Source of the DNA: Vitrella brassicaformis CCMP3155
Lineage: Eukaryota; Protista; Chromerida
DNA: 36,321 bases
Reading direction: 5' to 3'
Assembly: GCA_001179505.1 (NCBI GenBank)
Contig: CDMY01000653.1
Coordinates: 1 to 36,321 of the forward strand
Made by a program: the position numbers and the translations under genes. Below the pieces are notes generated by a model. That model had not been told where the DNA came from and searched no databases. It saw only the letters and a program-made list of their open reading frames with translations. This document shows positions 1,644-32,192 of the stretch, one piece after another (position 1 is the first letter of the stretch; each line of letters opens with the position of its first letter).

Positions 1644-4302
1644 TCATGTTGAGCGAATTGTCACGGTGTTGGACGGTTTGCCTTTGGTGCCGTCGGCCAT
1701 CAGGGGCACCACTTGCCACACACAGCACTCTGCAGCACTGCCCTCGCTCTCCTCCACGCTGTTCCTGACGGCCTCGACCAAATCGACCAACTCACTCGTC
1801 GACACACCGTCCTCAAAATGCTTTTTCTCCACTTGCCGCGTCACCGTCATGGGGGCGCCCTCACGCTCGCCCACCAGCACCTCCCACCCCACCACACCCG
1901 TGGCACCGTTCCTATCGACAGACATCAAAGACACACACACAGAGATAGACGCGTTCATTGGAGTCAGTCAGTGCACTCACTCATTGAATGTATCTATCGT
2001 GTCTGTCGTACCGCACTCACTGCCCACGCTCACTCACCAGCTGAAGTGCAGCGACGGGCTGGTTGCCACAGCGGTGCTGCCATGGCCACTACCATTGTCT
2101 TGGTTGGCCACCATTAGTGTGGGCGGCTCGGCCGGCTCCCCTTGCCACCGATGCCGCGTGGCTCGATAGGACGAGCCGTGCACAAACTGCATCTCCAGCA
2201 CCTTGCTGCTGGTCTGGGGGTCGATCTCGGTGTAGAAGGGCATCAGCGGCTTCCCGATACCGCCCCAGTCTATCGCGTAGTTGCCGTTGTCCAGCAGCTG
2301 GGAGCTGCCCGTCGCCCACGTGTATAAGTCCGGCGAGTGCCGGTACTCCCACACCTGTGTGGCTGTCATGGCGGCCTCGTCAACGCGGTAGCTGACGGCT
2401 CGTGAGTACTCGGGAACGTCACGCGGACCGTTGTCATACATCGTCAGCAGCAGAGTGCCATTGTCTTGGGTCAAGAGCCGGACATCGTGTTGGAATGAAA
2501 AGGGCCGCGATTGGTTGATGAAAATGAAGTCGTTGAACCCCTCCTTGCCTCCCAGGCGCCACAGGATGGTCCCTGTGTCTCGCGACACCTTGACGACGCC
2601 CAGCATCCGCAGCGACATGATGATGTGCCCGTCGCTGGACCAATCCACTGAGTTGACGTGCGCCTGACCGAACCGACCACACATTCACAGAGGGACGAAG
2701 GGAGGATACAGTACACACACGATCGAAGCCCAAAATACCCCTATCCTCATCCAGTTCTCACTCACAAGGTCCCAGAAGGGGAATTGCTGTGCGGCAATGG
2801 TGTATGTGTTCCGCGTGTGGAAGAGTGCATCGGGCAGCTTGATCCCGTCCCACGACCGCCACTCGTAGACCACGTTCCCCTCTGCGTCGAGCTCCTGCAC
2901 GATGGCCCCGGCGAGCGTCTTGGTGGTCGATTCGCCCCATATGCTGGGAAGCTCCTCCAGCGGCAGGCCGTGTTCTTTCATGGCGGCCTCGTGTGGCTGC
3001 AGGTCCACTGGCTGGATGTCGTAGGCCATCAGCAGCACATGCCCGTCCTCGCGCAAGTGGATGCCGTGCAGCTCTGCTTCGTACCTGCACACCACACAGC
3101 CAAGGCAAGCAGACAGAGCAGACAGGGCCCGGCCCGTGTGTGTATGCGATGCGTGTCTGAGGGCAGGGCAGCCAGGCCAGCAGCCACTCCCACTCACTCA
3201 CCCACCCCTCCCCACCCATGGCCAGGTCGGTGTGTCTTGACCTCCGTGTACGATTTGTCAAGCTCCACATACAGCAGCCGCCGCTCGTCGAAGTAAGTGA
3301 GGTGCCCCGTCCGCTGCTGCACAGTGAAGTCCGCATGGCCGATTCGCTGCGGGTGGTCCTGCCGCTCCAGCCGCCGATGGAACACCGGCTCGCCTGAGTC
3401 GTCCAGTATCAGTAGGTAGGGGGCGAAGCCAGGGGCAGTGGCATTGTCGCCCTCCACCAGAGTTCGCAGGATGATGTTGGCTGCGAAGATGTAGCCCTCT
3501 GCTGTCGCCCCCCTCTTGGCTGGCACCGTGACGTTGACCAGAGGGAAGTCAGAGGGAAGCGTGATAAACGAGCTGGGAGGGGAGATGAAGCTCTGCGTGG
3601 CCGCGGCCTTCTCTGCCGATGATGCCTGCTGCTGGTGCTGCTGATATGTTGGCTGTGGCTGCTCCGTCAGTCTGCGCAGCTTGTCACCAGACTCCTTCGG
3701 CGACACGGTGAACCTCCAAGTGTATCCCTCCAGCACGGTGACAGCTTCGTTCGCCTCTTTGACGCGCAGCCCAGGCTTGACGTGGACCGTGACGGTCTCG
3801 CCCGCTGCGAAAGGCGACGAGGGCTCGAAGATGACCATGCTGCCCCCCTCAACCAGCTTCACAGAGCCATCACACCCACCACTCTCAGAACCTGCAAACA
3901 GGCGAAAAGAATAGGCACAGCGCTGGAGTGCTGCACACAAAGATCGGTGTAGATAGTCGCTGGCTGACCGTGTACTGTCATGCCGGGCCCATCCGAAGCG
4001 CCCCTCTCCACGTTGGCGAGCGACAAGGTGGCCGAGTCACCGATGCCGCCCACACGAAGGGACACGGTGGTGTATGGCGAGACGAGTGAGGCTTCGGGCC
4101 GTGGATTGATGTAGCGAAAGGGGCTCGGTGAGGGTGAGGCCCGGGATTTCCTCGCGTCTTCGTTTTCCTCCCGAATGAGAGACCTCTTGGCGTTTGCTGG
4201 TGCTGCTGGTGTTGGTGCTGCTGGTGTGGCTGCGGTCGTTTCTAAGGGGTACAGAGTCATGGCGACAGCCAGGAGCATGGCCAGATGGGGGACAATTGTC
4301 AT
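1644..4302 (-). CDS. Secreted aryl-sulfate sulfotransferase (ASST family) with N-terminal Ig-like domain; 5 exons
   Basis: Exons 4302-3969, 3891-3216, 3084-2766, 2663-2038, 1911-1644 join in frame at GT-AG sites. Signal-peptide-like N-terminus (HLAMLLAVAMTLYPLETTA). Ig-like segment FRYINPRPEASLVSP...VIFEPSSPFAAGETVTVHV. ASST motifs LPSDFP, YLLILDDSG, ELHGIHL, VVYEWRSWD, DLAHVNS, WRLGG, FQHDVR, YDNG, SRAVSY, GSSQLLDNGN, SYRA, SWNGAT. Confidence 0.9.
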
Positions 4303-4912: not shown

Positions 4913-7900
4913 TCAAGCCCCTTCCTGCCCCCCACCGGCCTTGCTGCTCTGACCCTTGCTGGCCTTCTTGCCGCCGTGGTTGTCCTCGACCAAGCTCACG
5001 TCCTCAATCTCCACCTTGCCACGCAAAGACCGCCGCAGAGGCTCACTGAACGAGTAGTCGCGCAGAGCTGCCTTGGCGGCCACCTTTTTGCTGTTGACCC
5101 TGTTGACCAGAGCGCTGTCACCCTCCTTGCTGCTCTCCCCCGCTGCCACCGCACCACCGTCACCATCACCATCACCATCATCGACCCCATTCTCCTCGGC
5201 CTGGTCGGCCTTGAGGAGCTTGCTGGGCGGTTGTTCGGCAGACGGCTGGGGGGCTCTCGAGCGGTCTCTCTTGGGACGGCGGGGGGGAGCATTGTGGTGG
5301 TGCTGCGGGGGCTCGGCTGAGATGGACGCTTCGCTATCACGACGGGCACCACGGGGGCGGAGGGACCTCTTGTGCTTGCTCTCGACCACCATCTGAAGAA
5401 CAGGGAGGCAAGACAGACATCCGCCGGTGCATAGACGCTACGTTGTTGCTGCTCTTGTGACGTGGGGTGGGTGTCGTCACCTTATCGTTGAGCCCTTCAG
5501 GGGGGATGACGGGAGAGCTGGCCGACGGGTCACTGCCCATGGCCTGCAAACACACACACACACACACACACATTTCAAATGAAGAGGAGTGTAAGTCAGT
5601 GAGTGTGGTGTTCACCTCTCCGGCCCCCAGGCCATTCAGAGCCTCCATATTGTTCTCGGCGTCCTTGTCGTTCCTCCGCAAAGGCCCCTGCCGCTCTCCT
5701 AGAGGCTCTTCATCCCCTCCATCCCCACCACCACCATCAGCGTCTGGCTGCTCTGAGTTCGATCCACCACCCGCACAGGCCGCCGCTGCTGCTGCTGCCG
5801 CTGCCGCTGCTGGTCCTGGGCCGCTGTCGCCATTCTTGGTGTGCTGAGAGTCGTTCTCGCTCATGTGTTGGTCATGGTCATCCTCATGGTTGTCATGGGG
5901 AAGTAGCGGAGAGAGCAATGGGGGGATGGGTGCGGGGGGTGCTGGGGCTGCTGCTGGGTGGTCGTCCGACGGCTTGTCAGAGGGGGAATGGCCGTCAGCG
6001 GGCGCCTGGGGCTTGCCCTCGCGCTTGGCTCTCGCAGTGTCCCCGAGATTCGCCCTGATCTGCTCAGGCCTCGTCGCGAACAGATGGCTGATGACCATCT
6101 GGTTCTGCAGTCTTCTTGGAAGACTCAGGAGGTTCAGGGAGCGGCCGGGGGCGTCGGCGCTGCGATCTGGGCTATCATCAACAAACTGCACAGATAGACA
6201 GACAGATGGATCAACACACACACATACGGGATTATGTGGGGTGAGAGGTGGGTGCTTTGTGCTGTCTGTTCTGTGTGGTCTCTCGTTCGTTCCATCATGA
6301 CGTTCATTGATTCGTTCATTTACCTTGTCCAGCGATTCGTCAACAACAGCAGCGGCAGCGGCCGCAGCGGCCGCACCACACGCACCACCCGTCTGGCGGC
6401 TGTTATCTGCTCCACACGCCCCTGCGCCACCCTCACGACCAACCAACTCGCTACACTCAGCCTGACCGACGCACACCAGAACACACCCAAGCTAATGCAC
6501 ATCAATCACATACGGCCGCATTATGGCCGGCCTTGTTGTGGTTTCCCTCCGTCTGTCTGTCTGTCCCTACCATGTTTTGATCATTGCTTGAGGGTATCTC
6601 CTTCTCCTTATCGCCGCCCACATCTTCCTCTCCACCGCCGCCCACCTCCTGAGGGGGCACTACTGGTGCCCCAAGCACCACAAACTCGTTGTCACACGCA
6701 AAGCCCATCGCCACGTCGTCAGATGAACCGTCAGCACCACTCGCACCAGCAGCAGCTGCTGCTGCACCGCCGCTTTCACCAGGTTCCTCATGTGCACCCA
6801 CGACCTGACGAACGAACAAGGCAGAAGGCAGGGCGCCCCACACATGCATGGCGATCGACCCCAGCTTGCTGCCTGCCTGTCTGCCTGTCTGTCTGTCTGT
6901 CTGTCCATTTGCGCGGTAGTGCTCTGCCCACCTGGTCGCTTGGCGAAGTGGTAAGGGCTGCCGCCTTGTCCTCTTGCACGGCTTGGCGCTTGTTCTCCTC
7001 GTCGTCTTTCTGGTCCTTCTGCTTGGCCTCGTCCATGTCGAGTGGCTGCATGGTCTCACCGGCATCAAGCGCTGGGAGCTGTGGCGTGAGTGGGCGAGTT
7101 GCGGACGGAGGGCGTGGGGGCAGCACGGGGGACTGGGACTCCTCGGCAACAACACACTGAATGCGATGCACCCCCACCAGCCATCCAGCGACACACGGAG
7201 AACAAACAACGGGATGAGTGAGTGGCCGTGTCTGTGTCGGTCTGTCATCAATCGTCCCATCCCCTCTCACTCACCTGGTCAGCGGGAGAGCAGGGGCCTC
7301 CTCGCTGCCTGTGCGACGATCCATCCCCACGAATGCGGCCGGGGCCCCGCTCCCCACCGCCCCCCTCGTCTGACCGCAGAATCCCGTCCGCCTCATTGAT
7401 GTCGTCACAAGCCGCTGCTGATGCAGATGCCGCTGCTCCTTGTGGTGGTGGTGGCGCAGCGTGGCTGGTGCGAGAATCGGCGAGGTGTTGAGGCAGCTGC
7501 AGGGGCGGCCGGTCCCTGACAGTCTTGTTCCTGACCTCCACAGCTTTCTGCAGCGCCAGGCGGACGCCTTTGCGGGTGGGTTTGATGGGTATGGGCAGAG
7601 CAGGGAACGGGCCCGCGGCGAAATGGCCGTCGCGGAGGGCGACCATGACGTCGGGACCGTCGGTGCCGTTGGCGGCCGCCACCAGGGCGAGCTGCTCGCT
7701 GGCATAAGCCGCCACCTCCTGGCTGCTCAGTACGGCATCATCACCTGCAGCACCTGAAGTGGACGAAGCCCCATCTGCAGCAATCGGTGAGGTGACACAC
7801 ATTACATGCATTACCGAAGCACATCCATACCTCCCTCCCTCCCTCACTCCCTCCCTCCATGACCTTGGTTATCGTGTTCCCCTTCTCCATCCTCATCCTC

Positions 7901-10900
7901 GTCGTCTCCCCCATCGTCAGGCTCGCCGTCGCTACCCTCAATGACGACCTCGTAGTCACCCTGACCATCTCCCACACCCTCGTCGGCCTTGTCGGCGCCA
8001 GCGGGGTGGTTCTGGTCCGACCAGAGCGACCGGATGGGGGGATTACCGATCGTCTTGGCCAGCCGATTGCGAGTCTCGACGGCCTTCTCGAGGGCCTTGT
8101 CGATGCCCTCTCGGGTGCGTTTTTGGGGGTTGATGGTGCGGGAGGAACGGTGTCCACTGCCTTGGCGGAAGCGGATCACCCACGCGGAGTCGTACCAGAT
8201 GACGTTGATCCTCTCGGAGCTGTTGAGTCGACGCAGCTCGGCCAGCCGCTGCCTGGCGTAGCGGTCGAGGGCGTCCCTGTCCACCTCAGCAGCAGCAACA
8301 GCAGCAGCAGCGGACGAGCCTGAACAGCAGCAAACAAAACGACACGTATGTGACTGACTCGGCGGGAGTGTGGTGTGGGTGTGTGTCCTGTGGCACCCAC
8401 CTGCAGAGGCCTCTGTCCTCCCTCTCGCCCGTTTCTGCGGCTTGCGGTGGTATTGCTCTGCAATGATGCATTGAACCACCAAATGTGATTGATGTGCGCA
8501 CAGCCATCCCATCCCATCCCTCCACTGTTGTTTGTGTTTTGTGTCGTGCAGTGCAGTGCAGTGCAGTGCACCCATGGATCTCTCCCCCTTTGTGTCTCTG
8601 TGGCTCACTCACCGTCTGCATGGTCGTGCTCGTCGTCTTCCTCTTCCTCCTCCTTGACGCGCGCCATCTCGCCTGACCCCTCAGCGACGCCACCGGTGCC
8701 AGCCGGGCAGCCCGGCGGCAGCGACTGGATGGCGGGACGGCCCAGATCCCTGGCTACTTGGTTGCGGATGGCCATAGCCTCCTCGAGGGCCTTGTCGATG
8801 GCCTCGCGTGTGCGGGGCAGTGGTGTGATGGTGCGCCACACCCGGCCTCCCTTGTGGCGGAACTGGATCGACCAGGCGAACTTGTGCCACCTGAGATTGA
8901 CGTTCTCGGTGTCGTTGAGGCGACGCAGATCCGCCAGCCGATGCTTGGCGTAGCGGTCGAGGGACTTGATGTCCACCGACGCACCACCATCAACCGCATC
9001 TGAACGAACACCACACACCCGCCCATCCATCCAGCCCTCCCTCCCTCCATGAATGCACCTCCCCCCCTTTGCGTGTGGCTCACTCACTGTCTTGTTCCTC
9101 GTCCTCATCTTCCTCCTCTTGCTCGTCCTCAGGCGCGACGCTGCTGCCCTCCATCTCGCTACCCTCACCATCGCCATCCCCCCCTCCATCGGGCCCTCTG
9201 TCGTCACTCCGGTGACGCCGAGGCGGCAGCGACTGGATGGATGGGTAGCCCATGGTCTCGAGCAGTTTGTTGCGCTTCTCGACTGCCTCCTGCAGGGCCT
9301 CGTCGATGCCCTCTCGGGTGCGGGCCTGGGGGCGGGAGGTGGCGTAGTGCGCCTTGCCGTCGTGGCGGACACAGACTTGCCATCTGCCGTCGTGGTGCCA
9401 GCTGATGTAGGTGCTCGTGTGGCGGTTGAGGTGACGCAACTCGGTCATCCGGTCCTCGGCGTAGCCGTTGAGAAGGCCACCCCTCCTGGCCGCAGCAAGA
9501 CGAGACGAACCTGGAGACCATAGCAGGCACAGAAGCAGCACAGCACAATACAACACATACTCGGACAGACATGCACTCACGTGGGTGTGTGTGTGTGTGT
9601 GTGTGTGTGTACCTGGAGATCCTCCTCTCCGTTTCCGCCTCTTACGCGCCCTTTGGTCGTGCTCCTCTCCCTCTCCCTCCTCGTCGTCATGCTCGGCCAT
9701 GTCCATCTCATCGCCATCATTGCCATCTCCCACGCCCTCGCCCTCGCCCTCGTCGTCACCGCCGTGGCGGGGGGGATAGCGGAGAGGGGGAAGGCCAACC
9801 GTCTTGGCCAGCCGATTGCGCTTCTCGACTGTTTCCTTCAAGGCCTTGTCGATGGCCTCCCGGGAGCGGCCTCGCACTCTGATTCTGAATGACCTCTGCT
9901 GGTTGTCGAGGCGGATCTGAATGACCCAGCCGTTGCGGTGCCACATGATGTGGGTGCCTCTGGAGCCATTGAGGCGACGCAGCTGGCCCTGCCGCTCCAC
10001 GCCGTAGGCCTCAAATGCCTTCTTGTCTACCTCACTCGCACCATGCGCCGTGCCGATCTCTACTTCCTCCTCGTCCTCAGACGCGCCCCCCTGCAGCTGC
10101 TCGTCTCCTTCGCCCTCATCGCCACCACGATGCCGCGAATGCAGCGACCTGATGGGCGGAAGGCCAGCCGTCTCGGCCAGCCGGTTGCGAGTCTCGATCG
10201 CCTCCTCGAGAGCCTTGTCGACGGCCTCTTGGGTGCGGCTTGACGGGCTGATGGTGTCGTAACTGGCTGATCGACCTGACCGGCCGCCGACTCGGATCAT
10301 CCACGTGAACTGATGCCACACGATGTAGATGCCCTTGGCGCCGTTGAGGCGGCGCAGCTGCGCCAGCCTCTGCTTGGCGTAGACGTCGAGGGCGTCCTTG
10401 GCGCCCACCGACTCACCACCAAACGAGCCTGCACATCACATCACATCACGCCCACAAAATCAGCACACACAGGTGTGGTGCGCATGCGGGTGTATGTGTG
10501 GGTTGCGTAACACGCACCTGACGATGGCTCTCGACCCCTCTTGCGCGCCCTGTGGTCAACGTCCATCTCGACCTCCCCATCGCCGCCACCTTGCTCCTTC
10601 CTCGACAACCGACGCAGCGCCCGCAGCAAACGGCCCTCTCTCGGCACTCTCGGGCCATGGCCACCATCACCAGTACTTGACGCAGCAGCAGCAGCAGCAG
10701 CAGCAGCAGGTGCTGCGGCTGCGACAGCAGCTGCCGCTGCTGCTGGTGGTGACTCCCCGCGCCTCCCTCCGTGGGCAAAAAGATCGACCGGCTCCCCAAG
10801 GACAGGGCGAACGCATTGTGGTAGGCCCCACTCTGTGGCGATGCGGTCTCGGTGTCTGACGGCCTGGGAGAGGGATCGGTCGATCTCCCGGGGCGTGAGG

Positions 10901-13900
10901 CTCTCGACGACGAATTCGCGGTGGTGTGGTGGGGCGGTGAGGTCGGTTGGGTGCTGCAGGAACAGGATGAAGGCGCCGCGGCAGTCCCATGACAGGCCGA
11001 AGGACGACAGGGATGACACCACGTCGCTGGAGGGGTGGTGGGATGCGAGCAATAGAAAATAGGCGTTCTGGAGCTGGTGGAGCTGGTAGAAGGCGTAAGT
11101 GTTGGCCTCATGGGCTGGCATGCCGGCAACTGACACGCAAATGAAACACACAGGTGTCTGTCTGTCCCTGTGTCAATCGTGCTGTGCTGTGCTGTGCTGT
11201 GCTCACCTGAAGGTTTGCGATCGTTGGCTACGGCTACAGTGGGGGGCACTGGGTGGGCCCTGCGACGAACGACCTTCTTACCCCCACCTGACACACACAC
11301 ACGTACGTTAACACACACGACAATCCCACAGTCAGTCGCGTCGCCCCCAACACCTACCTCCCCCTCACCCACCCACCTCTGAGCGATGCAGATGAGGAGT
11401 CGCTGGCCCCCCCTCCCCTCCCTTTGTCAGCCCGCCGCTTGCCGCCCCTGTCTCTCTCCTTCTTCAATGGCCCGGCGCCACGCGAGCCGCCCACACCACC
11501 TTTCGGCCTCCCCTTTGCCGTCTTGGTGCTGGCCTTGCTGATCGCGTCATGCAGTGCCTGCCGGATGGCGGCCGTGGTGAGTGAGTCGGGCCGGAGGGAT
11601 GGCTGGTAGTCGCCAGAGCGGTAGCGGAAGAGGAGACGCTGGGAGGTCTCGACAATGACGCCCAGCATGGGGGAGGGGTCGCCAGTGGCCTGCTCGGCCC
11701 GCAGCTTGGCCCGCTCCATCAGCACACGGGCAGTGGCCGCCGCCTCGCTCGCCGTCAACTCCTCGTGGTCACCTGCACCCACACACACCACACACATAGA
11801 CGGGCACTAGAGATGATGTCAAGAAGGACTTCTGGCGATCCCCCCCCGGCCCCCCGCCCGCCCATCGACCGACTCGACTGACCTTTGTTGTGTGGCATGG
11901 GTATGTCGTCCTCGGTCTCTTCTGCATCCCAATCCGGCTCACTCAGCACCCCCTGACCCCCAGCAGCAGCCGCCATGGCGTTCCACCGCTCGATGGCCGC
12001 ATGCAGGGCGGGAAGTACGTCATCCTCACACGACACCGACACACCGCTCCACCTCCCGCCCTTGTCCTCGGCCTCCTCACAACCACCACCACCACCACCA
12101 CCCGCTGCTGCTGCTGCTGTGGGTGTGTTGTTGGTGGTGTTGGGTGCCCCACCCGTGACGTAGAACTTGCCAGAGAGTATCTGAGCTTTCCACTTGATGG
12201 GGAGGGCGGGCTGTGAGGGGCGGGAGGGATCGAGGTTGGTGCGACGGAGGCGATTGAGCATGAGGCGCACAAGGGTGCTGATGAGCTTGAGGGCGTCGGA
12301 CCTCCTCTGGCTGCGGGAGGGCCGCTTGCCGTTGCCATTGGCGGGTGGTGGGGGGCCCTCCACCAGCTGGCCATTGCTGCGATGCCGGGGCTTGGGCCAA
12401 CGAGACTGCATCTCCTGACAGACACAGACAGACAGACAGACAGATGAGCAACCGACCCACCACCCCCTCTCCCTTCCTCCCTCCCTCCCTGTCACCAACC
12501 TGATAGTCCTCGCTCCCGTCAGCATCGTCACCGCTCTCGCCGCTGTCACTGTCACTCTCCTCATCGCTCTCACTGCCACTGCTGCCGTCGCCACCCGAGT
12601 CGGCGCCCTGGCCGTGGTGGATCTCACGCGTGTAGTCGACGTGCCGGCGGGCCCGTTTGCCGTCGCCACCACCACCACCACCAGCGGCGGCGGCAGCGGC
12701 AGCGGCAGCGGCAGCGGCAGCGGCAGCGGCAGCAGGGGAAGCAGCCTCGCGGCAATGGTCGCTGCAGAAATACTGAGGGAACCGACGGACACAGAGAGAG
12801 AGAGACGGGGAAATGGATGCGCTTGTGTGGCGTGTGGTGTGGTTGAGTGGTGTTCTGTGGTTGGTTGGTTGTTTACTTCCTTCTCGCCCCCGTAGTTGTC
12901 ATCGAACTCGTTGAGGGACATGCCGTTGACGATCCTGATCGACATTCGACAAGGACACACAAGGGAGGAGGGAGGGAGGGAGGGATCACCAACGAAACGA
13001 AGCCACACAGGTGCGTGCGGTGCGTGTGTGTTGACTGACTGACTGACCACTCTCGGCAAGATGTGCATTTGATCTTCAATCTCGTGCCCAGGACCTTCTT
13101 GCTGTCCTTGTGGTACTTGTCCCGCAGCGCATACCGGCTGGCGGGGCCGGGGATCACCTTGGACGCCAGCAACTCACTCACCATCCCTGACATACATGAG
13201 TGAGACCAATCAACCCACCAACCATGGCAAGTTTACACACACACACAGGTGGACAGACAGGACAGGACAGAGAGGCGTTGCGTACGGTTGTACAGCTGGC
13301 GCCCCTTGCCGATGCCGGGGAACTCCAGCCGCCAAACCACAGCACAACCGTGGAATCTGCACACACACACACACACATACATATGGATGGATGGATGGAC
13401 GCATCGTTGGCTCACTTGCAGGTGCCCTGCTTGGCTGTGCACTGGCAGAAGCCCGCCGTCAGCGCGTAGCCCAGCCACAGCTTGACGGCCTCGTACTGCA
13501 CACACGCACACAAGCATCCATCCATTCCATCCACCCCTGTGTGTGTGTGCTGTGTGTGGGTACGTGGTATGGGATGAAGTTGACGGCTTCGTTGATGTTC
13601 TCGCCGGTGTTGAAGCCGAAATGGTACGCCTGACACACACACACACGCAATATGCACACAGACACAGACACACACAGACAGACAGACAGACACAGACGGA
13701 GCAGTTGATGTGAGTCGTGTGTCTGTCGTGTTTGTCACGCCCTTGTCACCCACCCACCGCAGGCAGGGTCACGACGAAGCTACGGGCACGTTGGATGACG
13801 CTGGTTACAACCACCACACCACACACCCACACGTGTGCACAACACCACCGATGCGTCCATCCCCCGTTGCCTGACTGACCTACGTACCGGTGTACGGTGA

Positions 13901-15231
13901 TGCCGTTGGCCTTGAGCCACTCGGGGTGGATGAGCAGCCGCTTGTGGCGCATGTACTCGGGACACCTCTCGTGCATCCTCTTCATCTCCTCGTTGATCAG
14001 CCGGTCCAGCCTCTTCTTGTGCTTGGCAGGCACCACGTACCACACCCTGACAGACAAACGACACACACACACACACACACACACACATGGATGGATGGAT
14101 GGTGCACACACACGGCCTTCAGGGGCCAGGGTGGGGAGGGTGTGTGTGTGTGTGGTGTGGCTGCTGACTTGACGTCGCCCCCATGGTTGTAGTTCATCGA
14201 CGCCAAATCACGGTCCTGACCACACCACACACCACACCACACACCACACCACACCACATAGCGCGCAGATACGGAGGCCATCCATCCATCCATCCATGCA
14301 TCCACTGTGTGTGTGTGTGCCAATTGGTGTGTGTGTGTCGAGTGCCCTGGTCACCTACCTCTCTGTGGTTGCCGAAGACCGTTCCGATGGACCCAAAGTA
14401 GCCGTACTGACACACACACACCACAGACATACAGACACATCATCAAGGCAAAGTCTATGGATGGCATGCGATGCATGTGTGTATCGTTTTTGTCTAGGTG
14501 TGTGTGTCTAATGCATTTATTGGATACCGGTGTGTTGATGCCTTCCATACGCGGCATCTCCCTCAGGGCGTCCCCTTTGAGGTGGTTGAGGTTGAAGGAC
14601 TTGCACCTGTCGGGCCCGTCAAAGAAGCTCGTCACGATGTTGGCCGCGTACAGCCGCGCCGCCCTCTCCTCGGGCCGCTTCTGCCCTTCCTCCTTCGACC
14701 ACTGACAGCCAACGACACACCACACCACACCACACACAGGCGGAATGGGTTCATGCGTGGGGGGTGTTGGTGCGTGTGTTGGCGTACCATATCCCAGATG
14801 CGCTTCTCGAACTGCAGGATGCCCTCGTCCTTGCCCAAGTCGATGTCAGCGGTGTCGAAGGGCAGGGCCACCTCTCTCGCCTCCAGCCGGTAGTCGTCAC
14901 CATGATACCTACCACACACACACGCACACACACACACACACAATATGTACCTCTGTCCGCCGCTTCTCCCTCCCTCTCCCTCCCTCGCCCCGACAGACTC
15001 ACTGGTCTTTGCTCTTGTTCATGGTGTCGATTTCGACTTCAAAGATGTAGGGGTGCGGCAGTTGGCCGCTGGACACCGACTGGTGGGTGCGGGTGACCCG
15101 CTGCGATAGGACCCCCTCCACATCCGTCAACTTCTCGAGGTCCTCGTACCCCGCCTCACGCGGCACCCAACCGGGGGGAGGCACCAGCTGCATGGATCGA
15201 CGGACGGGCGGATGGATTGCAAATATGCAGC

Positions 15232-15262
<31 letters not shown>

Positions 15263-15690
15263 GGGAGGGAATGTGCGAATGGACCGTTTCTGTGTCTGTG
15301 TGTCGTGCATGGATCGGTGGATGGATCGGTGGATGGATGGATGGATGGCTGCGTGAAGGCGTACCAGCAAGACTCCCTTGTTTCGGTGCTCCTCCTTGGC
15401 GAACAGGTCGCCGAGGAACTTGTTGGTGTCCTGCATGTCCTCCTCCGTCATCGCTATCGGCTCGACGGTCGGGATGTCCACCTGCCATCTGAATGAATGA
15501 ACAACAATACACCACACCACACCACACACAGAGATAGAGGGAGTGCGGTGGTGGGCATTCAATGCATGGAAGCTAAGCTGTTCGGTGGTGTGACCGGCAT
15601 TCAATGTGTCTGTCAGTGTCGTGTCGTGTGGACGGACCTGTCGATGATGTCGTGGGCAGGTGGTGCCCCCGCCGCGGCAGCGCTAGCCAT
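4913..15690 (-). CDS. KDM4/JMJD2-type JmjN-JmjC histone demethylase fused to a Cys4 motif and ~9 AP2-like modules; 30 exons, ~2,517 aa
   Basis: Exons: 15690-15638, 15488-15365, 15187-15003, 14908-14788, 14701-14528, 14406-14359, 14215-14169, 14046-13888, 13800-13758, 13629-13564, 13495-13416, 13356-13286, 13186-13048, 12934-12877, 12772-12500, 12414-11883, 11772-11377, 11287-11207, 11129-10518, 10428-9613, 9510-9088, 8999-8613, 8319-7864, 7774-7275, 7156-6932, 6804-6571, 6461-6324, 6185-5616, 5543-5481, 5392-4913. All junctions are GT-AG with matching phases; total 7,554 nt, one open frame from ATG (MASAAAAG) to TGA. Confidence 0.85.
7495..12300 (-). repeat. Array of ~80-aa AP2-like protein modules: five close copies plus four degenerate ones
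   Basis: Close copies at ~8030-8275, 8720-8965, 9225-9480, 9775-10025 and 10145-10400 share L(D/E)xYAxxRLAxLRRLN...W...WxI...(R/T)R(E)(G/A)IDKALEEAxExRNxLA. They are also similar at DNA level (e.g. ggccagccg.ttgcg..tctcga...gccttgtcga at ~8057, 9805 and 10174). Degenerate copies lie at ~7495-7720, 10815-11100, 11520-11740 and 11980-12300. The repeat is certain; the AP2 fold is inferred from the three-strand W/W pattern plus a C-terminal A..A...R helix. Confidence 0.8.
13416..15488 (-). other. JmjN + JmjC catalytic region of the large gene
   Basis: JmjN: IPTVEPIAMTEEDMQD...KGVLLLVPPPGW. JmjC: [43 protein letters not shown]...CPEYMRHK...AYHFGFNTGENINEAVNF...FCQC. Fe ligands H-x-E...H, the 2-oxoglutarate Lys, and the KDM4-type Zn site (C..H..CxC) are all present. 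Confidence 0.93.
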
Positions 15691-18930: not shown

Positions 18931-21629
18931 TCAGCCCCCCGCCGAGCCCCCCGTCCGTGGCGTCCCCGTGCCAACACGGGACCGCTTCTTCACCTGTGGC
19001 GGCAGCGTCGCGGCCATGCTGCACGCAGACGACCCGCTCCCACTGCCCCCCGTACCCTTGCTGCCGCCCGAGCTCGGCATGCCGTTCATCGGTCCATGGC
19101 TGCTCGGGTGTGGGCCATCCATTGGTGCCCCGGCCGACTCGCCGGACACGCCCGGGGAGCTGCTGTCCTCTGAGCAAACCATCCTCACGTCCTCGGGGGA
19201 CACACACGGACCCATGGTGCTGGTCGGGACCTGCTGGGGCGACACCTGCATCGGTACCGCACCGCCGCCACCTGACGACCGGTGGCTCGACGAGGATGGC
19301 GCCTGTGTTGTGGATGCTGCTGCTGCTGGGGGTGCGGGTGACATGTGGAATGATGGGGGCTGAGGGTGGTGGGCGGGGGCGTGGGAATGATGAGCCGCAG
19401 CGGCCATCTTCTGCGCCTCCATTGTGCGGGGTGAGAGGGGGGGCCAGATGGTGCTGGGCGGCGACCGGGGGGAGAGGTCCCTCTCCCTCGGCGACAGGGG
19501 CGGCCAGATGGTCGACGGCACGTCACGCGGGCTCTTCTCGCCTTCGCCAGCCTGCTGTGGGTGGTGGTGGGGCGCCTGATGCTTGGGCAGCTGGATGTTC
19601 TTGTGGGTGTGGGCGCGTCGCATGGCCTCGCTGCCCTGCCTCTCCTGCTCGATCGAGTCACGCCGGGACGATGGGAGGCTCTGCTGCTCTTTGTGGGGGT
19701 GGGCCTGCGCCTCTGTGGATGCGGTCGCAGCAGCAGAAGCAGCCGGGGACAGCACGAGTGACGGCGGTGGGCGGGGAGGGGCGAGCGCCGCTCTGAAGAA
19801 CACACACAGCACACACGAGAAACACAAAAAGAGAGAGATATGATGATGCATCGGGTGTGTGTGTGGTCCATGTGTGGTGCAGGCGTGTGTGTGTGCGTGT
19901 GTGTGTTGCTTACTCGCTCACCTCACTGAGTTGAACCAGGAGTGGGTGAGTGCCTGTTCGGCGGTGGGCCGGTCCTGCGGGTTGAGTTTGATGAGGTGCT
20001 TGAGCAGGTCGATGCCGGCCGGCGACATCCTCTCCTTGACGGCCGTCGCGAACTCGCTACCGACCTGCCGGAAGAACTTCTCGATCCCATACGTCATCAG
20101 GTATCTGCAGAGAGAGAGAGAGAGAGAGAGAGCGAGAGGCGGACGGACACATACTATAGTTAATGGAATGGGTATCAATCAGGGGCGTGTGGGTGCGGTG
20201 TGGGTGGCCTACGTACGTGAACTTGATGGCGACGTTGATTTTGTCGTACATGTTGGTGTGCTCGATCATGTATTGCCCCCTGAGCGGCACCGTCAGGAGG
20301 TGGAAAAATATCATACCCACCGAAAAGATGTCGGCCTGATGGATGGATAGATGGATGGACACACACACACACGCACACATGCCTCACCCTCTCGCTCTCT
20401 CTCCGTGTGCACCCGCCGCGCGTCGCGTACCTTGGGGCCGTCGTAGGGCTTCTTGGTCCACATAACGGGGTCCTGGTACTTGTTCTTGCCCCTCTTGTCA
20501 GGGATGGGCAGGTAGGGCGACTCACCCGGCCGAGCACTAGGGTTGGGCCTCAGCCGCTGCGCCATGCCGAAGTCGATCAGGATGGCGCAGTTCTGGTTGG
20601 CGGGGCAGTCGTAGCGCATCAGCACGTTCTCCACCGACAGGTCCAGGTGGACGATGCGGTGGGCGTGCATGAACCGCACACCGTCGAGGATCTGGTAGAT
20701 GAGGCGCTTGAGGCTCTCCTCCGGCACCATCGGCTTGGCGGTGAGGAACTCAAACATGTCCCCGCCGGCGGCAAACTCGCTGACAAAGTACATGTTGTGC
20801 GCGTCCTGCCCACAGTCGATCCACGTGGCGATGTTGGTCGCCGGCCCGTTCAGAATGGTCAGGTACCGGAGGCAGCCCGTGTCGCCCAGAGGCTGCTCCG
20901 TGTCGCGCTTGGCCTGGGCCTGCTGCACGAATGACTTGGGCACCATCTTGACGGCCACGTGCTTCTTCTCCTTGTGGTCGTAGTGGAGGTAGACGTGACC
21001 CTTGTTGCGCTGCGCCGCCTGCAGGACGCGGATGGCCTCGTACCGCCCCTCGCCGGTGCGCTTGTCGTACTCCTGCCAGACGCGCACGATGGCGTAGTCG
21101 GTGGGCTCCCAGGGGTGGCCCAGGAACCAGGGAAGGTCCCCCATCCGCTGGTCGTACGCCACACGGTAAGGGGGAGGCGCGAACACCTCGTCGAGCAACA
21201 TCTGCACACAGCACAGCCACGCACAGAGAGATGCAGCAGCAGCTGATATGCGTGTTCGAATGCGATGCGTCGGTGTGTGTGTGCGTGTGGTTGCTGCGCT
21301 CAGCTCACTTGCTCTGTGGGGGAGGGGGGCAGAGGGGGAGGGGGAGGGTGTGGCTCGTTCGTCGTCAGTCTTGCTGGGATGATGTGGGGAGCGGCTGATG
21401 GGATCTCTCTCGCAATGGCTGGTGTCACCACAGCGCCCGCTTGCGTCTCATCAGACACAGACAGACAGACAGGACGCTCGCAGAGAGAGGCGCACTACTT
21501 GGAAGGAAGTCTATGGCTATGGCTGTGGATGCAGTCAATGCCTAGCCGCTTGACTTGCTGCAGAATTGCCTGTGTATTCTCTAGAGAATAGGCCGAGGGA
21601 ACAAACAGGAAATCCTCCTTTGGTGACAT
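18931..21629 (-). CDS. Ser/Thr protein kinase (CAMK-like, atypical HLDLSVEN catalytic loop) with low-complexity C-terminal tail
   Basis: Exons 21201-20431, 20335-20217, 20104-19922 and 19792-18931 splice in frame. Motifs VAVK, YFVSEFAAGGDMFE, HLDLSVENVL, IDFGMA, GKNKYQDP, ADIFSVG, LNPQDRPTAEQALTHSWF. An upstream exon ends at 21309; the start (ATG at 21629?) and first junction are unresolved. Confidence 0.85.
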
Positions 21630-27221: not shown

Positions 27222-30200
27222 ATGAATGCATCTCGCGTTGCTCGCACGGCCACAGCTCCCCTCGCCCAGCGAGCGCCAGCAGACCCCTCTGCGTCGGTCC
27301 TGCGCACCCTCAAGCGCAGGCTGCAGCGAACCCAGACGACCAACCAGCTGCTGGCCACTTACTATCGCAACCGGTCGTCCGTGGACCCCCTTCGTCTCAT
27401 GGTGACACTCACGAGGCTGGCGACGCTGTCGGCCGCTGAGAAGGACTTCCGCAAGAGGGATCTGCTCGGCGATATGCGCCTCCGCGCCCTCGTGGCCGAC
27501 CTGACGGCTCACCTGACGAGCAACGGTGATGGTGCTGGTGGTCCACACATGCCGCAGCTGAATGGGGCGGCAGATGAGCCGGCAACAGTTGCTGTAGGCG
27601 ATGGGCGGTCTGTCAGCTCCGTTGCGTGGGGCCTCGCGAAGCTCAACCTGTCATCGGCGGACTTCATCGCTCTCTGCGGCCATGATCTGTGGCGGGAGGT
27701 GTTTCATAAGGCAGCCAAGGCTCTTGAACGAGGCACCCTGGGGCCCTCTCACGTTGCGCAGCTGATGTGGGCGGCCGGCCGGTCCAAGCACAGACACGAA
27801 GGCTTCATTGATGGCGCAATTGCTAGTCTTGGCGCCTGCCTGAGCGAGTACCGGCCTGAGGAGCTGGCTACAATCACGTGGGCGCTTGCCGAGGTCGGCT
27901 GTGGCTCCCCTGGTGTATTCAGCGCCATTGCGGAACATATGACCCATCACCGTATCGACGATCTATCCCCCGGAGGATTGTCGTGTCTTGTGAGGGGCCT
28001 CTCTGTGGCGGACTGCTACCCCGATGCTCTTCTGCACCGAGCTGTGAGGAGTGCGACTTCGCTGCTGGATCGCCATGAGTGGGATGCGACAGACATGAGC
28101 GACCTCGCCCAGTTTGCGGCGTCCATCGCACGCACACCGTCCCCATCTGTCAAGGCCCCGGCATTCTTCTGCTCTCTGGCGTCCTATACCCTCTCTCTGC
28201 TCGACCAGCCAAAACACACGAAGCTCTACAACCGTGAGCTGAGCATCATCGTGTGGAGCTTTGCCGCCTCCCACCAATACTCCTACGATCTCTTCAGGCG
28301 GACGTTCGAGCGGGACTGGACCCCCAGGCCAGAAAAGGACGACATCACGCCGATCGACGAGAGCCGCGAGGCCATCGACCCAAGACGCGTATACCTCAGC
28401 TACGCCTACGCACGGCTGGTGCACCCGCAGCCACCTTTCCCCCCTCAACTCTCGCCCCCTCCCTGGCTGTCGGCGTGCAGGCCGCTGATGCAGGAGGGAC
28501 TGGGCCCCAATATGTCTTCGTCGACGATGCATTTGGAGGTGATGCGTGCGGTGGAGCGGGTCAGCGGTGTGCGTGTGGTCAACGAGTTTGTGGACCCATG
28601 GGGATTTGCTGTCGATATGGCGCTGGTCGGCCCTGCAGGGTGCGAGCCATCAAGGGGAGAGGAGGGGGCTGCATCGTCCCGCCAGGAGAGGTCTGAGGGC
28701 TCTGGTGGGGAGGCGAACTCGCGCCGCCGTTTGGTGCGGATCAGCGAGTCGCCCGAGGCGCTGCTGGACCTGACTGACACGTGGGGAGACGACACCGACC
28801 CGGTAAGCACAGCAGGCACAAAGGCAGGCCAGCAGCTCACTCACTCATGTGTGCCATTCCATTTGCCGTGTGTTTCATGCAATCAGCGCTCTGCGATAGC
28901 GGCCGTGAGCCGCCTGGCCTACTGGGCCACATACCCCGCCGCAAAGAGGGCCAGCAGACCCACGCACCAGGAAAGCACGGCAGACGAGCAAGACACCGCC
29001 ACCCTCAAGGAGGCCATCTTCATCGGCATACAGTCGCGCGCCAAGTCAGCCATCCAAAGCGACCCACGGTTCACCGACCTGCTGCAGCGGCTGACTAACC
29101 AAGTGGTCCCACCGACACACAGGGGAGTGCTGCCGAGTATCGTCGACGTGAGTGCTTTCGGCCCGCGTGATTGGGGTGCAGTGCGGGGGAAGGTGCTGAG
29201 TGCTGGTGTGGGTGTGGAGGATATGGCGATGCTTGCGGTGGCCGCGGCTAACGGCGGCCTGCTCATTGACGGGGTGCTCAAGTGCCTGGGCGAGGTGAGG
29301 AAGCGACTGCACATGACCGCGCGTTGTGTCTCCTCTCTCCTTGATGCGTGTGTTGTGTTGCCAGGTGTTGGTCGGCGAGAGGATGTTCGACACGGCATCC
29401 CCGAAGCATCTTGTCGACATCGCCTGGAACTTCCACAAAGTCAGCGAGGAGATCAGATCGAAGCACACGGACAGGGCATACTTGAAATCTCCTTTCTATC
29501 AGTTGGGCATCCTGTCCCTTCCACTGGCCCAGGCCGTGACCAGCCAGATCCTCCAGCGGCCAGCAGCCTTCACGCCCCGCAACCTGGCGACCATCTCCCA
29601 GGCCGTCTCCCAGTACGCCGCTGCCCTGCCCGAGTACATGGGCTTCCTCCCAAGTGTGATAAGGGAGCGCTCCGCTGACATCGAGTCGCCCCGTGACCTG
29701 GCCCTCATTCTGTGGACGCTCGCACGGCCGCATGGGCAAGCGGCCGGTGCTTCGCCAGGGAGCGATCTGCTGGACTCGCCTCTCTCCCTGATAACTGAGG
29801 ACCCTCCTGTTGGTGCTGGAAGGGCCACTGCACCAATGGGGACGAGTCCACTCGATGACGCGAGTGACGTCTTCACGCAGTCGGGTACGTTGCTGCTGAG
29901 GTCGGGGGTTTTCGCGTCGGCCACTGCGCAAGACATCGCCATGTTGGCGGCCACATTCAGCCGCGTCAACGTGGTCCATCCGGAGCTGTTTGGCGAGATC
30001 AGCAAGATGATGCAGCAGCAACAGCAGCAGCCGGAGAGGGGATCGTCACAGCTGCGGTGGAAGCCCATCGACATATCCACAGTGATGGTGGCCATGACGC
30101 GGCTCGGCTGGCGCGACGACGCCCTGCTCATGGCGTGTGCATCCATGACTTCCGACCGGCTGGATGAGTTCTCGCCCGACGAGCTCTCACACGTCCTCTG

Positions 30201-32192
30201 GGCGCTCGGCAAGTGGCGCTCCAACGTCACCCTGCAGCCCGCCCAGTCATTGCTGCGGCGCGTCACGGCGTCCCTGCCTGCAATGGCGCACCACTACGGC
30301 CCCGCACAGCTGGCAGGCATCCTTTGGTCGTGGGCGGCACACAGCACGAGCATCGCGTCGCCCACGCAGCTCGCCTCGGTGTGTGCGGCCATCGCGAGAT
30401 CGGTCACTCCCCGGCTGCATGGCGATGTGGATGTGAGGGCGCTGTGTCTGCTGGCCTGGGGTATGGCTCGGGCAGGGGTGAGTGTGCATGAGCCAAACGA
30501 GGCCATTCGGGCGTTCTACCGGGAGATGACGTCAGTGTCTATGGCGCGGCTGCACGAGTTCGGCCCTCGCGACCTCGCGAACCTTGCCTATGCGATGACG
30601 AGTGGCGGTGTGCATGGGAGGGAGGTGTATGAGAGGCTGGCCACGGCGTCGCTCCCAGTGGTGTCCAAGTGTGCGCCGATCGACGCGGCGCATCTGATGT
30701 GGGGCTTCAGCAAGGCGGGATGGCTCCACCCGCCCCTCTTCCGCGCCGTCGCTGACCACCTGCTGTCCACACGAGCTCTCCTGACCCACACCAGCAACGC
30801 AGTGGATGACTCGTATATCGTCTGGAGCGTCCTAGCCTCGGCATTCACCGAGGCCGGTCTCTGTCACGCGCCCCTACTCAACCACATCCGCGAGTGGCTG
30901 ACGCCCCATGTCGTGAGCGGCCGGTTTCCGACAGACAACCTGCTGTCGCTCATTTGGCATTTCGTCAAGAGCGGCATTGACTGCGGGGAGGCCATTCTGC
31001 AGACCGCTGTGGAGCGGCTGGGTCTCAGGGATGGCAATGAGGGCGTCAACACAGAGAGGGGGGAGTGTGTGGGTGTGGGTATGGCGCCGAGCAAGCACCA
31101 CGTGGCGGCATTTCTGTGGTGCCTGGCGATGGCGCGGCAGCTGCCGGCATTCCCTGATGTCGTGCGTGCGGGAATGGGGCGTGACTGGTCGACTCAGTCC
31201 AGGGAACACATCACCGACAAGGAACGAAGCATGGTATGTATGGTCAGTCTGTCTGCTCTCTCACCCTTCCCGACCCACACACAAGCCTTTGCACACCATG
31301 ACACGTGTGTGTGTGTGTGTGTGTGGTGTGCATGTGTGTGTGGGTGCAGATCTACCAAGTGCACCTGGCGTGTGTGGTGGAGGGCCTGGATGAGTCGATG
31401 CGTCTGCACGGCCAGTCACTGGAGGATTGCAAGGCGGCCTACAGCAGCGGCCGGGCGGCACAGCCCACTGAAGCCTTCCCCCGAGGCATCGAGAGTCTCG
31501 CATTACGTCGGGATGCGGCCAAGCGGCCCTGGGAGAGCCACAGGCGGCGTGCAGTGCCGGAGATGTCCAACTTCCACCGTCACATGTCTCGTTTTCTGAC
31601 GGGTTTGGGTGTGCCGCACATCAATGAGGGGGTGACCGAGGAGGGCATCAGTGTGGACATTGAGATACGCGACAACACGGTGTCTGGTGGTGGTGGTGCT
31701 GATGGTGGTGGTGAGACAATCGCCATTGAGCTGGACGGGCCGTCGCACTTCCTCTACCGACTCGACTTGCCTGACGATGCCGACAACAGCGTGTTGAGTG
31801 ACGGTGGACCCACCAGACAGTCGACGGCACACTGCCAGCAGCAGCAGCAGCAGCAAGGGGATGGTGCTAGCAGGGACAACGAGCTGATATCACTCAGGAC
31901 GCCCTCTGCACCACACAAAATGAGGTACACACACAAGACAGACAGACAGACAGACATCCACCGCCAGCCACCTCGTGGATATATGTGTAGGTGGCGGCAT
32001 CCGACGCCCACGACACTGTTCAAGCGGTGGGTGCTGGAGGGCCTGGGGTGGCGAGTGATATCCGTGTCTCTGTTTGAGCTGGATCCGTTGTGGAGTGACC
32101 CGCGGGCGCGGATGGACTACCTCCTGGCACTGTTGCACGCATCACAGTCCCCCTACCTGAGACGGAAAGTGCCGCAGTCGGTGCAGCGGTAG
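27222..32192 (+). CDS. Organelle-targeted helical-repeat (OPR/HPR-like) RNA-binding protein with C-terminal RAP domain; 5 exons, ~1,544 aa
   Basis: Exons 27222-28802, 28887-29294, 29365-31233, 31350-31924, 31991-32192 join in frame. Arg-rich, presequence-like N-terminus. Many ~37-38-aa repeats (PEELATITWALAEVG, PDELSHVLWALGK, PRDLANLAYAMTSGG, PAQLAGILWSWA). RAP domain: FHRHMSRFLTGLG...SVDIEI...IAIELDGPSHF...KRWVLEGLGWRVISV. Confidence 0.9.

Follow-up and report, generated by a model that had tools for sequence, protein, structure and literature searches.

A predicted KDM4-clade JmjC demethylase linked to an array of divergent AP2 modules in a gene of the alga Vitrella brassicaformis

A stretch of genomic DNA from Vitrella brassicaformis CCMP3155, a free-living, culturable alga that is related to malaria parasites, was found to contain a gene that most likely encodes both a demethylase of the KDM4 type and an array of AP2-type modules. 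This stretch, which will be referred to as the window, is the contig CDMY01000653.1 of the assembly GCA_001179505.1 (36,321 nucleotides), and the gene lies on its minus strand. The gene is expressed, and the account of it that we hold to be probable, albeit not by much, is that its product consists of a KDM4-clade demethylase, a putative FCS/TRASH-like zinc finger, a flexible linker of low complexity and an AP2 array, the last of which would tether the enzyme to DNA motifs in cis.

Results

Structure and Expression of the Gene

The model for the gene was built from the three minus-strand reading frames, the coding stretches of which were joined at GT-AG sites. It extends from an ATG at position 15690 to a stop codon at position 4913 and comprises a coding sequence of 7611 nucleotides (nt) for a protein of 2536 amino acids (aa), with all introns being of the GT-AG type and no internal stop in the joined frame. 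The proposal made in an initial annotation of this DNA, that a KDM4-type JmjC domain is linked in a single frame to AP2-like modules, is supported by this model, except that 31 exons are needed in place of the 30 which were counted there; the additional intron (13357-13415, GTGAGC...GCAG) is required for the frame, which breaks after exon 11 if this intron is left out.

Public RNA runs were compared with the model over positions 7700-13690, one of them (X1) providing spliced contigs and the others (X2-X4) unspliced contigs. Nine introns were confirmed exactly by X1, in which they are seen as CT..AC on the plus strand. These introns are located both on the array side of the gene (8458-8612, 9000-9087, 10429-10517, 11288-11376, and 11773-11882) and on the JmjC side (12773-12876, 12935-13047, 13187-13285, and 13496-13563), and the lengths of the small exons 10, 12, 14, and 23 agree with those of the short "sides" of X1. 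No place was found anywhere in the window for the loose ends of the RNA contigs, and these were not used.

The window as a whole consists of GC-rich eukaryotic DNA with short introns that are rich in CA/TG and CAGA repeats. In this gene the introns measure 68-177 nt, and in many of them a CA-rich stretch follows the donor and a GT/TG-rich stretch precedes the acceptor. The 102-nt intron 9511-9612 (minus strand), lying between the modules M4 and M5 of the array (Table 1), keeps the reading frame and contains no stop codon; a mechanical open reading frame (ORF; 9080-10408) reads through it, and its naive translation therefore includes 34 false residues. The join SPADQ-CVVAEE in the C-terminal tail of the protein (hyphen at the join) is shared with the protein P0019 and with P0001, an annotated paralogue that is described below. 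A scan of the window against Rfam gave no match.

The Predicted Demethylase Half

The identity of the catalytic domain is indicated by its exons both singly and when joined. Exon 8 by itself matched JmjC in Pfam (E 1.7e-8), and its matches in the PDB (E 1.6e-7) were only to KDM4A-D, one chain titled 2-oxoglutarate oxygenase, and Rph1. The peptide from exons 5-8, which crosses the joins 5/6, 6/7, and 7/8, aligned without any gap to residues 165-213 of KDM4D with an E value of 2.3e-12, as compared with 1.2e-6 for JMJ14, 3e-4 for Rph1, and 1.6e-3 or weaker for chains of the KDM5 family. The HxE motif is kept (NHRED opposite WHTED of KDM4D), as are the Asn and Lys for 2-oxoglutarate (2-OG; MNY...DVK opposite INY...EPK of KDM4D) and, in exon 8, the zinc-site Cys and His, where HERCPEYMRHK is aligned to GCGAFLRHK of KDM4. 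In the peptide from exons 9-11, the second His for Fe is retained in AAYHFGFN opposite YGYHAGFN, and CQC is found opposite CSC of KDM4D. The pocket pair Ala-Ile of KDM4D stands opposite Ala-Val in the Vitrella protein. The Fe triad, the 2-OG Lys and the zinc site, which had all been described as intact in the initial annotation, are thus aligned to KDM4D. As the HxE...H residues, the 2-OG Asn/Lys and the Cys/His/CxC residues align to KDM4, which outscores other JmjC families, the catalytic and zinc sites appear by sequence to be intact and the domain can be placed in the KDM4 clade.

The JmjN domain of the KDM4 type that was assigned earlier is weak. No match to JmjN was obtained in Pfam at E<=0.01, and the top six matches in the PDB, all of them to JmjN positions 21-63 of KDM4B/C, have the weak E value of 0.07; a putative, divergent JmjN is only weakly recognisable. 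Behind the catalytic domain, a segment of the form KCTSC...YFCSDHC, to which no reference was made in the initial annotation, showed similarity to YHS (5e-4), zf-FCS (9e-3), and zf-FLZ (0.1), all of which were below the cut-off.

Number and Sequence Features of the Array Modules

In order to define the array, nine candidate segments and then the six good ones were aligned, and each segment was scored by hhalign against a profile made of paralogue modules only. The modules M3-M8, which are about 90 aa in size, scored 99.6-100% in these comparisons. With the module profile, E values of 1e-22 to 1e-43 per module were obtained in the model, which is more than can be ascribed to chance. Six modules are therefore solid and two others (M1 at 60% and M2 at 79%) are marginal and degenerate, and the segment M0, with an hhalign probability of 3%, was rejected as a module; of the approximately nine modules that had been proposed, these six are the robust ones. 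The consensus of the modules is ...YAKxRLAELRRLN...W....W.I......TREAIDKALEEAVExRNRLA..G.PPIRSLP. The modules are positively charged (net +2 to +12), and the five stretches that link M3 through M8 are acidic (net -6 to -22). Identity between the modules is 32% in the sheet, 52% in the helix a1, and 60% in both the helix a2 and the tail that follows it.

Two sequence elements in and around the modules are also noted. Basic patches that resemble nuclear localisation signals (QRARKRRKRR, HRARKRGRE, and RKPQKRARGR, for example) are present in several of the M3-M8 linkers (e.g., 9613-9769 on the minus strand). The tail G-x-P-P-I-R/Q-S-L-P, which is found behind the second helix of M3-M8 (e.g., 8713-8745 on the minus strand) and also in distant members such as P0009, is foreign to canonical AP2 domains and could serve as a docking motif.

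Relationship of the Modules to AP2 Domains

An AlphaFold2 (AF2) model based upon the six-module alignment had a predicted local distance difference test score (pLDDT) of 89 and a predicted template modelling score (pTM) of 0.80. In this model a helix (residues 5-23) is followed by three strands (30-33, 36-43, and 46-52) and a second helix (59-80), so that the predicted fold is the three-stranded sheet plus helix of AP2 with an additional N-terminal helix. The earlier description of the modules as a helix, three Trp-containing strands and another helix is matched by this topology, with the qualification that the conserved Trp residues are located in two of the strands only. No match to the PDB was found by Foldseek at E<=0.001. 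Among the AFDB clusters, the matches were mainly to AP2/ERF-annotated entries (E 2e-3 to 0.1, TM up to 0.80) whose accession prefixes are typical of chromerid and dinoflagellate entries; the N-terminal helix is included in some of these matches, and others belong to proteins whose names refer to SANT or kinase. By VIA-align, three chains from the Toxoplasma gondii mitoribosome, two of them named AP2IX-6 and AP2IV-1 in the PDB, were in the lead (Z 6.1-6.2), and the further AP2 chains were TEM1 (Z 5.0), PfSIP2 (4.5), and ERF1 (3.8).

Searches with the window sequences by themselves were less informative. In Pfam, the ORF pieces and single modules gave no match to AP2, the sole weak match being to Arm-DNA-bind_2 (E 0.02), and a profile built from the six modules of the window found nothing relevant among the PDB sequences. 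A weak AP2 lead was provided by the ESM Atlas (score 0.85-0.87). An exhaustive hidden Markov model search of 1.84 billion representatives retrieved just 20 proteins, several of which are false matches to FG-GAP or low-complexity proteins; those true hits that bear an organism name are all from V. brassicaformis CCMP3155, the others being unnamed contigs or MMETSP transcripts. The proteins P0011 ("AP2/ERF domain-containing") and P0009 ("Chromo domain-containing") are among the hits. An alignment of the distant members revealed a gradient from the window modules to ordinary-looking ApiAP2 domains (those of P0014 and P0017), and the pair of sheet Trp residues typical of AP2 is kept in the modules. 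When 35 segments of the family were examined against Pfam, AP2 was the only family matched by more than one segment (five matches, best E 5.5e-4). The top eight matches of a 35-segment profile to the PDB sequences were all to apicomplexan AP2 domains, with 3igm (E 0.0012) being followed by AP2IX-6, AP2IV-1, AP2VIIb-2, and the AP2-bearing "RPL22" of the T. gondii mitoribosome.

The homology was further evaluated by means of a chain of profiles derived from non-overlapping alignments, consisting of the close modules (A4), the domains of P0014 and P0017 (A7), and seven canonical AP2 domains of P0025 and P0011 (A6), proteins that score against Pfam AP2 with E values of 2.4e-69 and 3.8e-18, respectively. 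Comparison of A4 with A7 by hhalign gave a probability of 96.0% (E 4.7e-9, 52 columns), and that of A7 with A6 gave 97.6% (E 4.3e-12). Recruitment of further canonical AP2 domains yielded two Vitrella proteins only. Based upon this transitive profile chain and the predicted fold, we conclude that the modules are AP2 homologues, as the initial annotation had surmised from their shape, and that they constitute a divergent Vitrella subfamily which fails the Pfam model.

Paralogues and Possible Origin of the Array

The annotated protein P0001 from the same assembly (CDMY01000649.1, GCA_001179505.1; L001:249-6621) contains six modules and shows 65% protein identity to the array, but its N-terminus differs and a JmjC domain is missing from it. 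Its array is 80-88% identical in DNA to positions 7909-10641 of the window. The homology begins at about residue 1004 of our model, and nothing else in the 16.6 kb of the P0001 contig matches the window. Since the homology is limited to the array, P0001 was regarded as a paralogue derived from a recent segmental duplication; its interpretation as an orthologue was rejected, as no match extends outside the array over the 16.6 kb. It also follows from the starting point of this homology that M0-M2 belong to the window gene alone. Another protein, P0021, carries four modules (40% identity), shares its N-terminus with P0001, and likewise lacks JmjC. The acidic linkers and KR patches of the window gene are common to both P0001 and P0021. 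In the window gene, each of the module-bearing exons 17-25 (7864-11772) starts in phase 1, and the presence of such symmetric exons is consistent with growth of the array via exon duplication.

Short ORFs on ENA contigs of about 2.2 kb, which are unspliced, include P0002 and P0006, which are 94% and 85% identical, respectively, to M7 and M8, and this suggests the presence of a close Vitrella-like organism in environmental assemblies. Neither an annotated protein of the window gene nor a JmjC-plus-module protein elsewhere was found in searches made with P0001, which led to paralogues only, and with a 442-aa ORF, which led to nothing. Other combinations are seen in Vitrella, where P0025 contains six AP2 domains together with PHD and P0009 contains a module together with chromo, and the AFDB hits A0A0G4H3W2 and A0A7S1JLJ8 have an AP2 or a helix-plus-AP2 module with SANT or kinase annotation. 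These cases suggest that this lineage may have a habit of fusing AP2 to chromatin domains.

The features of the gene are listed in Table 1. The neighbouring ORFs in the window, at 2034-2684 (minus strand), 20311-21207 (minus strand), 29326-32192 (plus strand), and 27222-29678 (plus strand), are unrelated to the fusion gene. Among them, an arylsulfotransferase-like piece was recognised with an E value of 6e-28, an exon of a protein kinase with 3e-23, and a protein of the FAST/RAP type with 1.5e-9 for RAP, and one neighbouring ORF of 818 aa had no match in Pfam.

Table 1. Features of the JmjC-AP2 gene of V. brassicaformis in window coordinates, in the direction of transcription.
Feature	Positions	Strand	Evidence
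Whole gene	4913..15690	-	31-exon assembly; nine introns spliced in RNA run X1
JmjN-like region, aa 20-68, exons 2-3	15161..15484	-	KDM4B/C residues 21-63, E 0.07; no Pfam JmjN
JmjC catalytic core, aa 162-340, exons 5-10; HxE...H, 2-OG Asn/Lys, Zn Cys/His	13564..14701	-	Pfam JmjC, KDM4A-D alignments, best E 2.3e-12
CxC of Zn site and C-terminal part of catalytic domain, aa 341-427	13077..13495	-	CQC vs KDM4D CSC; introns 13187-13285, 13496-13563 in RNA
FCS/TRASH-like zinc finger, C-x2-C ... FCS-x2-C, aa 428-466, exons 13-15	12743..13076	-	Sub-threshold Pfam; introns 12773-12876, 12935-13047 in RNA
Poly-Ala/Gly and acidic linker, aa 467-547, ending at putative donor 12500	12500..12742	-	Joined-frame model
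M0, proposed earlier as a module; not supported	11920..12303	-	hhalign 3%
M1, marginal degenerate module	11501..11883	-	hhalign 60%, 35 columns; flanking introns in RNA
M2, marginal degenerate module	10804..11207	-	hhalign 79%, 57 columns
M3, divergent AP2 module	10139..10411	-	Module alignment, profile, hhalign
M4, divergent AP2 module	9770..10042	-	Module alignment, profile, hhalign
M5, divergent AP2 module	9221..9487	-	Module alignment, profile, hhalign
M6, divergent AP2 module, modelled	8713..8985	-	AF2 pLDDT 89, predicted topology a-b-b-b-a; fold matches
M7, divergent AP2 module	8018..8296	-	Module alignment, profile, hhalign
M8, module without strand-1/2 Trp pair	7488..7739	-	hhalign 99.6%
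Low-complexity C-terminal tail, aa 1897-2536, exons 25-31	4916..7487	-	Predicted exon structure

Discussion

Proposed Function and Its Alternatives

The targeting of the enzyme to DNA in cis is, we infer, the best-supported mechanism for this protein. According to this proposal, the basic AP2 modules would contact DNA by means of their three-stranded sheets, which differ more from module to module than the other parts do; the demethylase would thereby be anchored in cis at particular sequence motifs that are probably clustered; and the tethered Fe(II)/2-oxoglutarate enzyme would remove H3 lysine methylation at these places. The fusion would then represent a covalent counterpart of the association between JmjC1 and ApiAP2 proteins in Plasmodium. 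The activity and substrate of the enzyme, the binding of DNA by the modules and the nuclear location of the protein are all presumed in this proposal.

A number of observations, which are considered in this and the following paragraphs, weigh against it. With regard to the AP2 family, none of the 18 modules from the window and its close paralogues matches AP2 in Pfam, even at E<=10, and a direct comparison of A4 with A6 by hhalign is weak (22%, P 1e-3), although in the same register. The confident structural model depends on a six-sequence alignment of paralogous modules, and a single-sequence AF2 prediction for the M3-M4 piece has a pLDDT of 40, which is unusable. Further, no Z score by VIA-align reaches 8, and similar values were obtained for HPF (Z 6.1) and frataxin (Z 4.9). 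The family is therefore not settled by structure alone, and it is the chain of sequence profiles that settles it; an HPF-like or frataxin-like fold was rejected as the family, since the sequence profiles indicate AP2 alone.

The alternative that survives best, and which we regard as unlikely but worthy of serious attention, accepts that the modules are derived from AP2 and holds that they do not read DNA. They would instead form a scaffold in which the conserved helices, together with the G-x-PP-I-R-S-L-P tail, bind proteins, histones or RNA and the acidic linkers touch histones, and the enzyme would be targeted or assembled by protein contacts. Conservation between the modules peaks in the two helices and the tail, not in the DNA-contacting sheet, and a protein-binding role would fit this pattern too, although variable sheets are also expected in a multi-module reader that has different half-sites. 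The five M3-M8 linkers are strongly acidic, and no module reaches Pfam AP2, but the modules themselves keep a net positive charge and the two AP2-typical Trp of the sheet. The closest solved structures are those of T. gondii mitoribosomal ApiAP2 domains, and four proteins of this mitoribosome carry ApiAP2 domains in which the canonical DNA-binding features are not used (PMC11742926). In view of this precedent, DNA binding cannot be assumed for the modules.

It could also be supposed, with little probability in our view, that two adjacent genes are present, a KDM4-like gene that ends near 12500 and an AP2-array gene that starts at the ATG at about 12408, with the continuous frame being either coincidental or due to read-through. 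The evidence on this point centres on the exon 15/16 join (12500 -> 12414), which lies beside masked repeats. Within the stretch 12934-10428, whose junctions the initial annotation had marked for mapping with RNA, the introns 12773-12876, 11773-11882, 11288-11376, and 10429-10517 were confirmed, but this join is absent from the X1 joints listed. There is an ATG at the start of exon 16, and the array exists without JmjC, behind a different N-terminus, in the two paralogues P0001 and P0021. The RNA evidence pertains to positions 7700-13690; for exons 1-9, which lie above this span, three peptides that cross joins align to KDM4 proteins, two of them gapless and that from exons 9-11 with a single 6-aa gap. 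Against two genes, exon 15 contains no stop and splices in frame via a GT-AG intron, and the X1 contigs over the JmjC C-terminal exons 10-15 and over exons 16-19 have nearly equal depths (68.9 and 70.1, respectively), the latter contig reaching 215 nt beyond 12411. From the frame, the GT-AG sites and this extension, the putative exon 15/16 join is placed as in our model. In a word test of the intron, 3 sampled words were held by X2-X4 and X1 was not among the listed holders, which is weak evidence in view of the three words. Moreover, the homology to the paralogues starts only at residue ~1004, and M0-M2 are exclusive to this gene. One gene encoding both the demethylase and the array thus remains the most likely arrangement.

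Lastly, the array might be a recent, weakly constrained appendage of an ordinary KDM4 enzyme that was spread by segmental duplication among a few Vitrella genes and has no specific function, as could be supposed from the restriction of the module subfamily to Vitrella-type sequences (20 hits in 1.84 billion representatives, all of the organism-named ones being from Vitrella), the close similarity of the paralogue (80-88% in DNA; synonymous divergence, dS, ~0.2), the moderate purifying selection on the modules (ratio of nonsynonymous to synonymous divergence, dN/dS, of 0.46 by the Nei-Gojobori method, window vs P0001), the degenerate state of M0-M2 and the missing Trp pair of M8, but this is quite doubtful, as the modules are more constrained than the linkers (dN/dS 0.83), six of them are intact and predicted with confidence to fold, the frame has been preserved across the symmetric phase-1 exons, and the gene is expressed and spliced.

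Comparison with Known Systems

JmjC demethylases that possess a DNA-binding domain of their own include Rph1/Gis1 of yeast and REF6/ELF6 of plants, which have C2H2 fingers, as well as KDM2 (CXXC) and KDM5 (ARID). This design is thus well known in principle, whereas an AP2-type version of it was not found described: no account of a JmjC+AP2 protein was encountered in the literature searched, in keeping with the initial annotation, where the architecture was thought to be undescribed. The Vitrella protein resembles the above enzymes in that an N-terminal JmjC region, with a putative JmjN, and a C-terminal array that would bind DNA are present in one polypeptide, and Rph1 is among the PDB matches of its JmjC domain; it differs from them in its appendage, which is of the AP2 type, present in 6-8 copies, separated by long acidic linkers and not zinc-dependent. 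With the KDM4/JMJD2 proteins (KDM4D and KDM4A-C), which are the best PDB matches, it shares the JmjC core with its HxE...H, 2-OG Asn/Lys and Cys/His/CxC zinc site residues, but it lacks the PHD or Tudor readers, its putative JmjN is divergent, and it contains in addition the putative FCS/TRASH-like finger and the long AP2 array.

The ApiAP2 factors (PF14_0633/3IGM, the tandem AP2 protein PfSIP2, and AP2-I) have in common with the modules a three-stranded sheet followed by a helix, and homology to them is indicated by the profile chain. In contrast to these factors, the Vitrella modules are below the detection limit of Pfam AP2 and are extended by one more helix on the N-terminal side and by the conserved PPIRSLP tail. 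The T. gondii mitoribosomal ApiAP2 proteins (9i05_XH, 9g6k_UG, and 9hqv_Yn) are the nearest solved structures (Z 6.1-6.2) and are also among the top sequence matches, and in AP2IX-6 a helix is present ahead of the sheet; unlike the Vitrella protein, these are ribosomal scaffolds whose DNA-binding surface is not used and which carry no chromatin enzyme. Arrays of several AP2 domains are known in ApiAP2 proteins ("one to four or more"; PMC4117751), and the accessory domains that have been listed for those of Plasmodium comprise AT-hook, zinc finger, acetyltransferase, pentapeptide repeat, and ACDC, but not JmjC (PMC4117751, PMC6631176). In the chromerid genome paper, many apiAP2 genes are reported, and the terms "demethylase" and "Jmj" do not occur in its text (PMC4501334).

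A comparison with Plasmodium is of special relevance in this regard. To our knowledge, a JmjC demethylase and its AP2 partners have so far been known only to associate as separate proteins, in this genus. PfJmjC1 co-purifies with PfAP2-HC, AP2-O5, and PF3D7_0613800, which have been proposed as its recruiters (bioRxiv 10.1101/2025.10.08.680194). Both PfJmjC1, a JmjN/JmjC demethylase, and the Vitrella protein, with its JmjC domain and putative JmjN, are coupled to AP2, the former functionally, with its AP2 association occurring in trans and its finger being of the C5HC2 type, and the latter as a single polypeptide.

Since apicomplexans and related organisms possess almost no specific DNA binders other than AP2 proteins, the question arises of how chromatin erasers are directed to their targets there. 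As a speculative and rather improbable extension of the above proposal, the array could read clustered or tandem motifs in a programmable manner (cf. PfSIP2 on SPE2 arrays) and place a KDM4 eraser at defined heterochromatin borders; P0001 and P0021, with their near-identical arrays, would then compete with it for its sites as natural antagonists, so that a lineage-specific, DNA-encoded eraser/blocker pair would have evolved in Vitrella, and the fusion would be a Rosetta stone for the direct recruitment of JmjC demethylases by ApiAP2 proteins across Myzozoa. As the AP2 subfamily described here is invisible to Pfam, current tallies of AP2 domains and of domain architectures for chromerids are too low. 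The covalent linkage of JmjC and AP2 in this gene provides independent evidence, of the gene-fusion type, for the functional link between PfJmjC1 and ApiAP2 proteins, and it does so in the form of a tractable single polypeptide.

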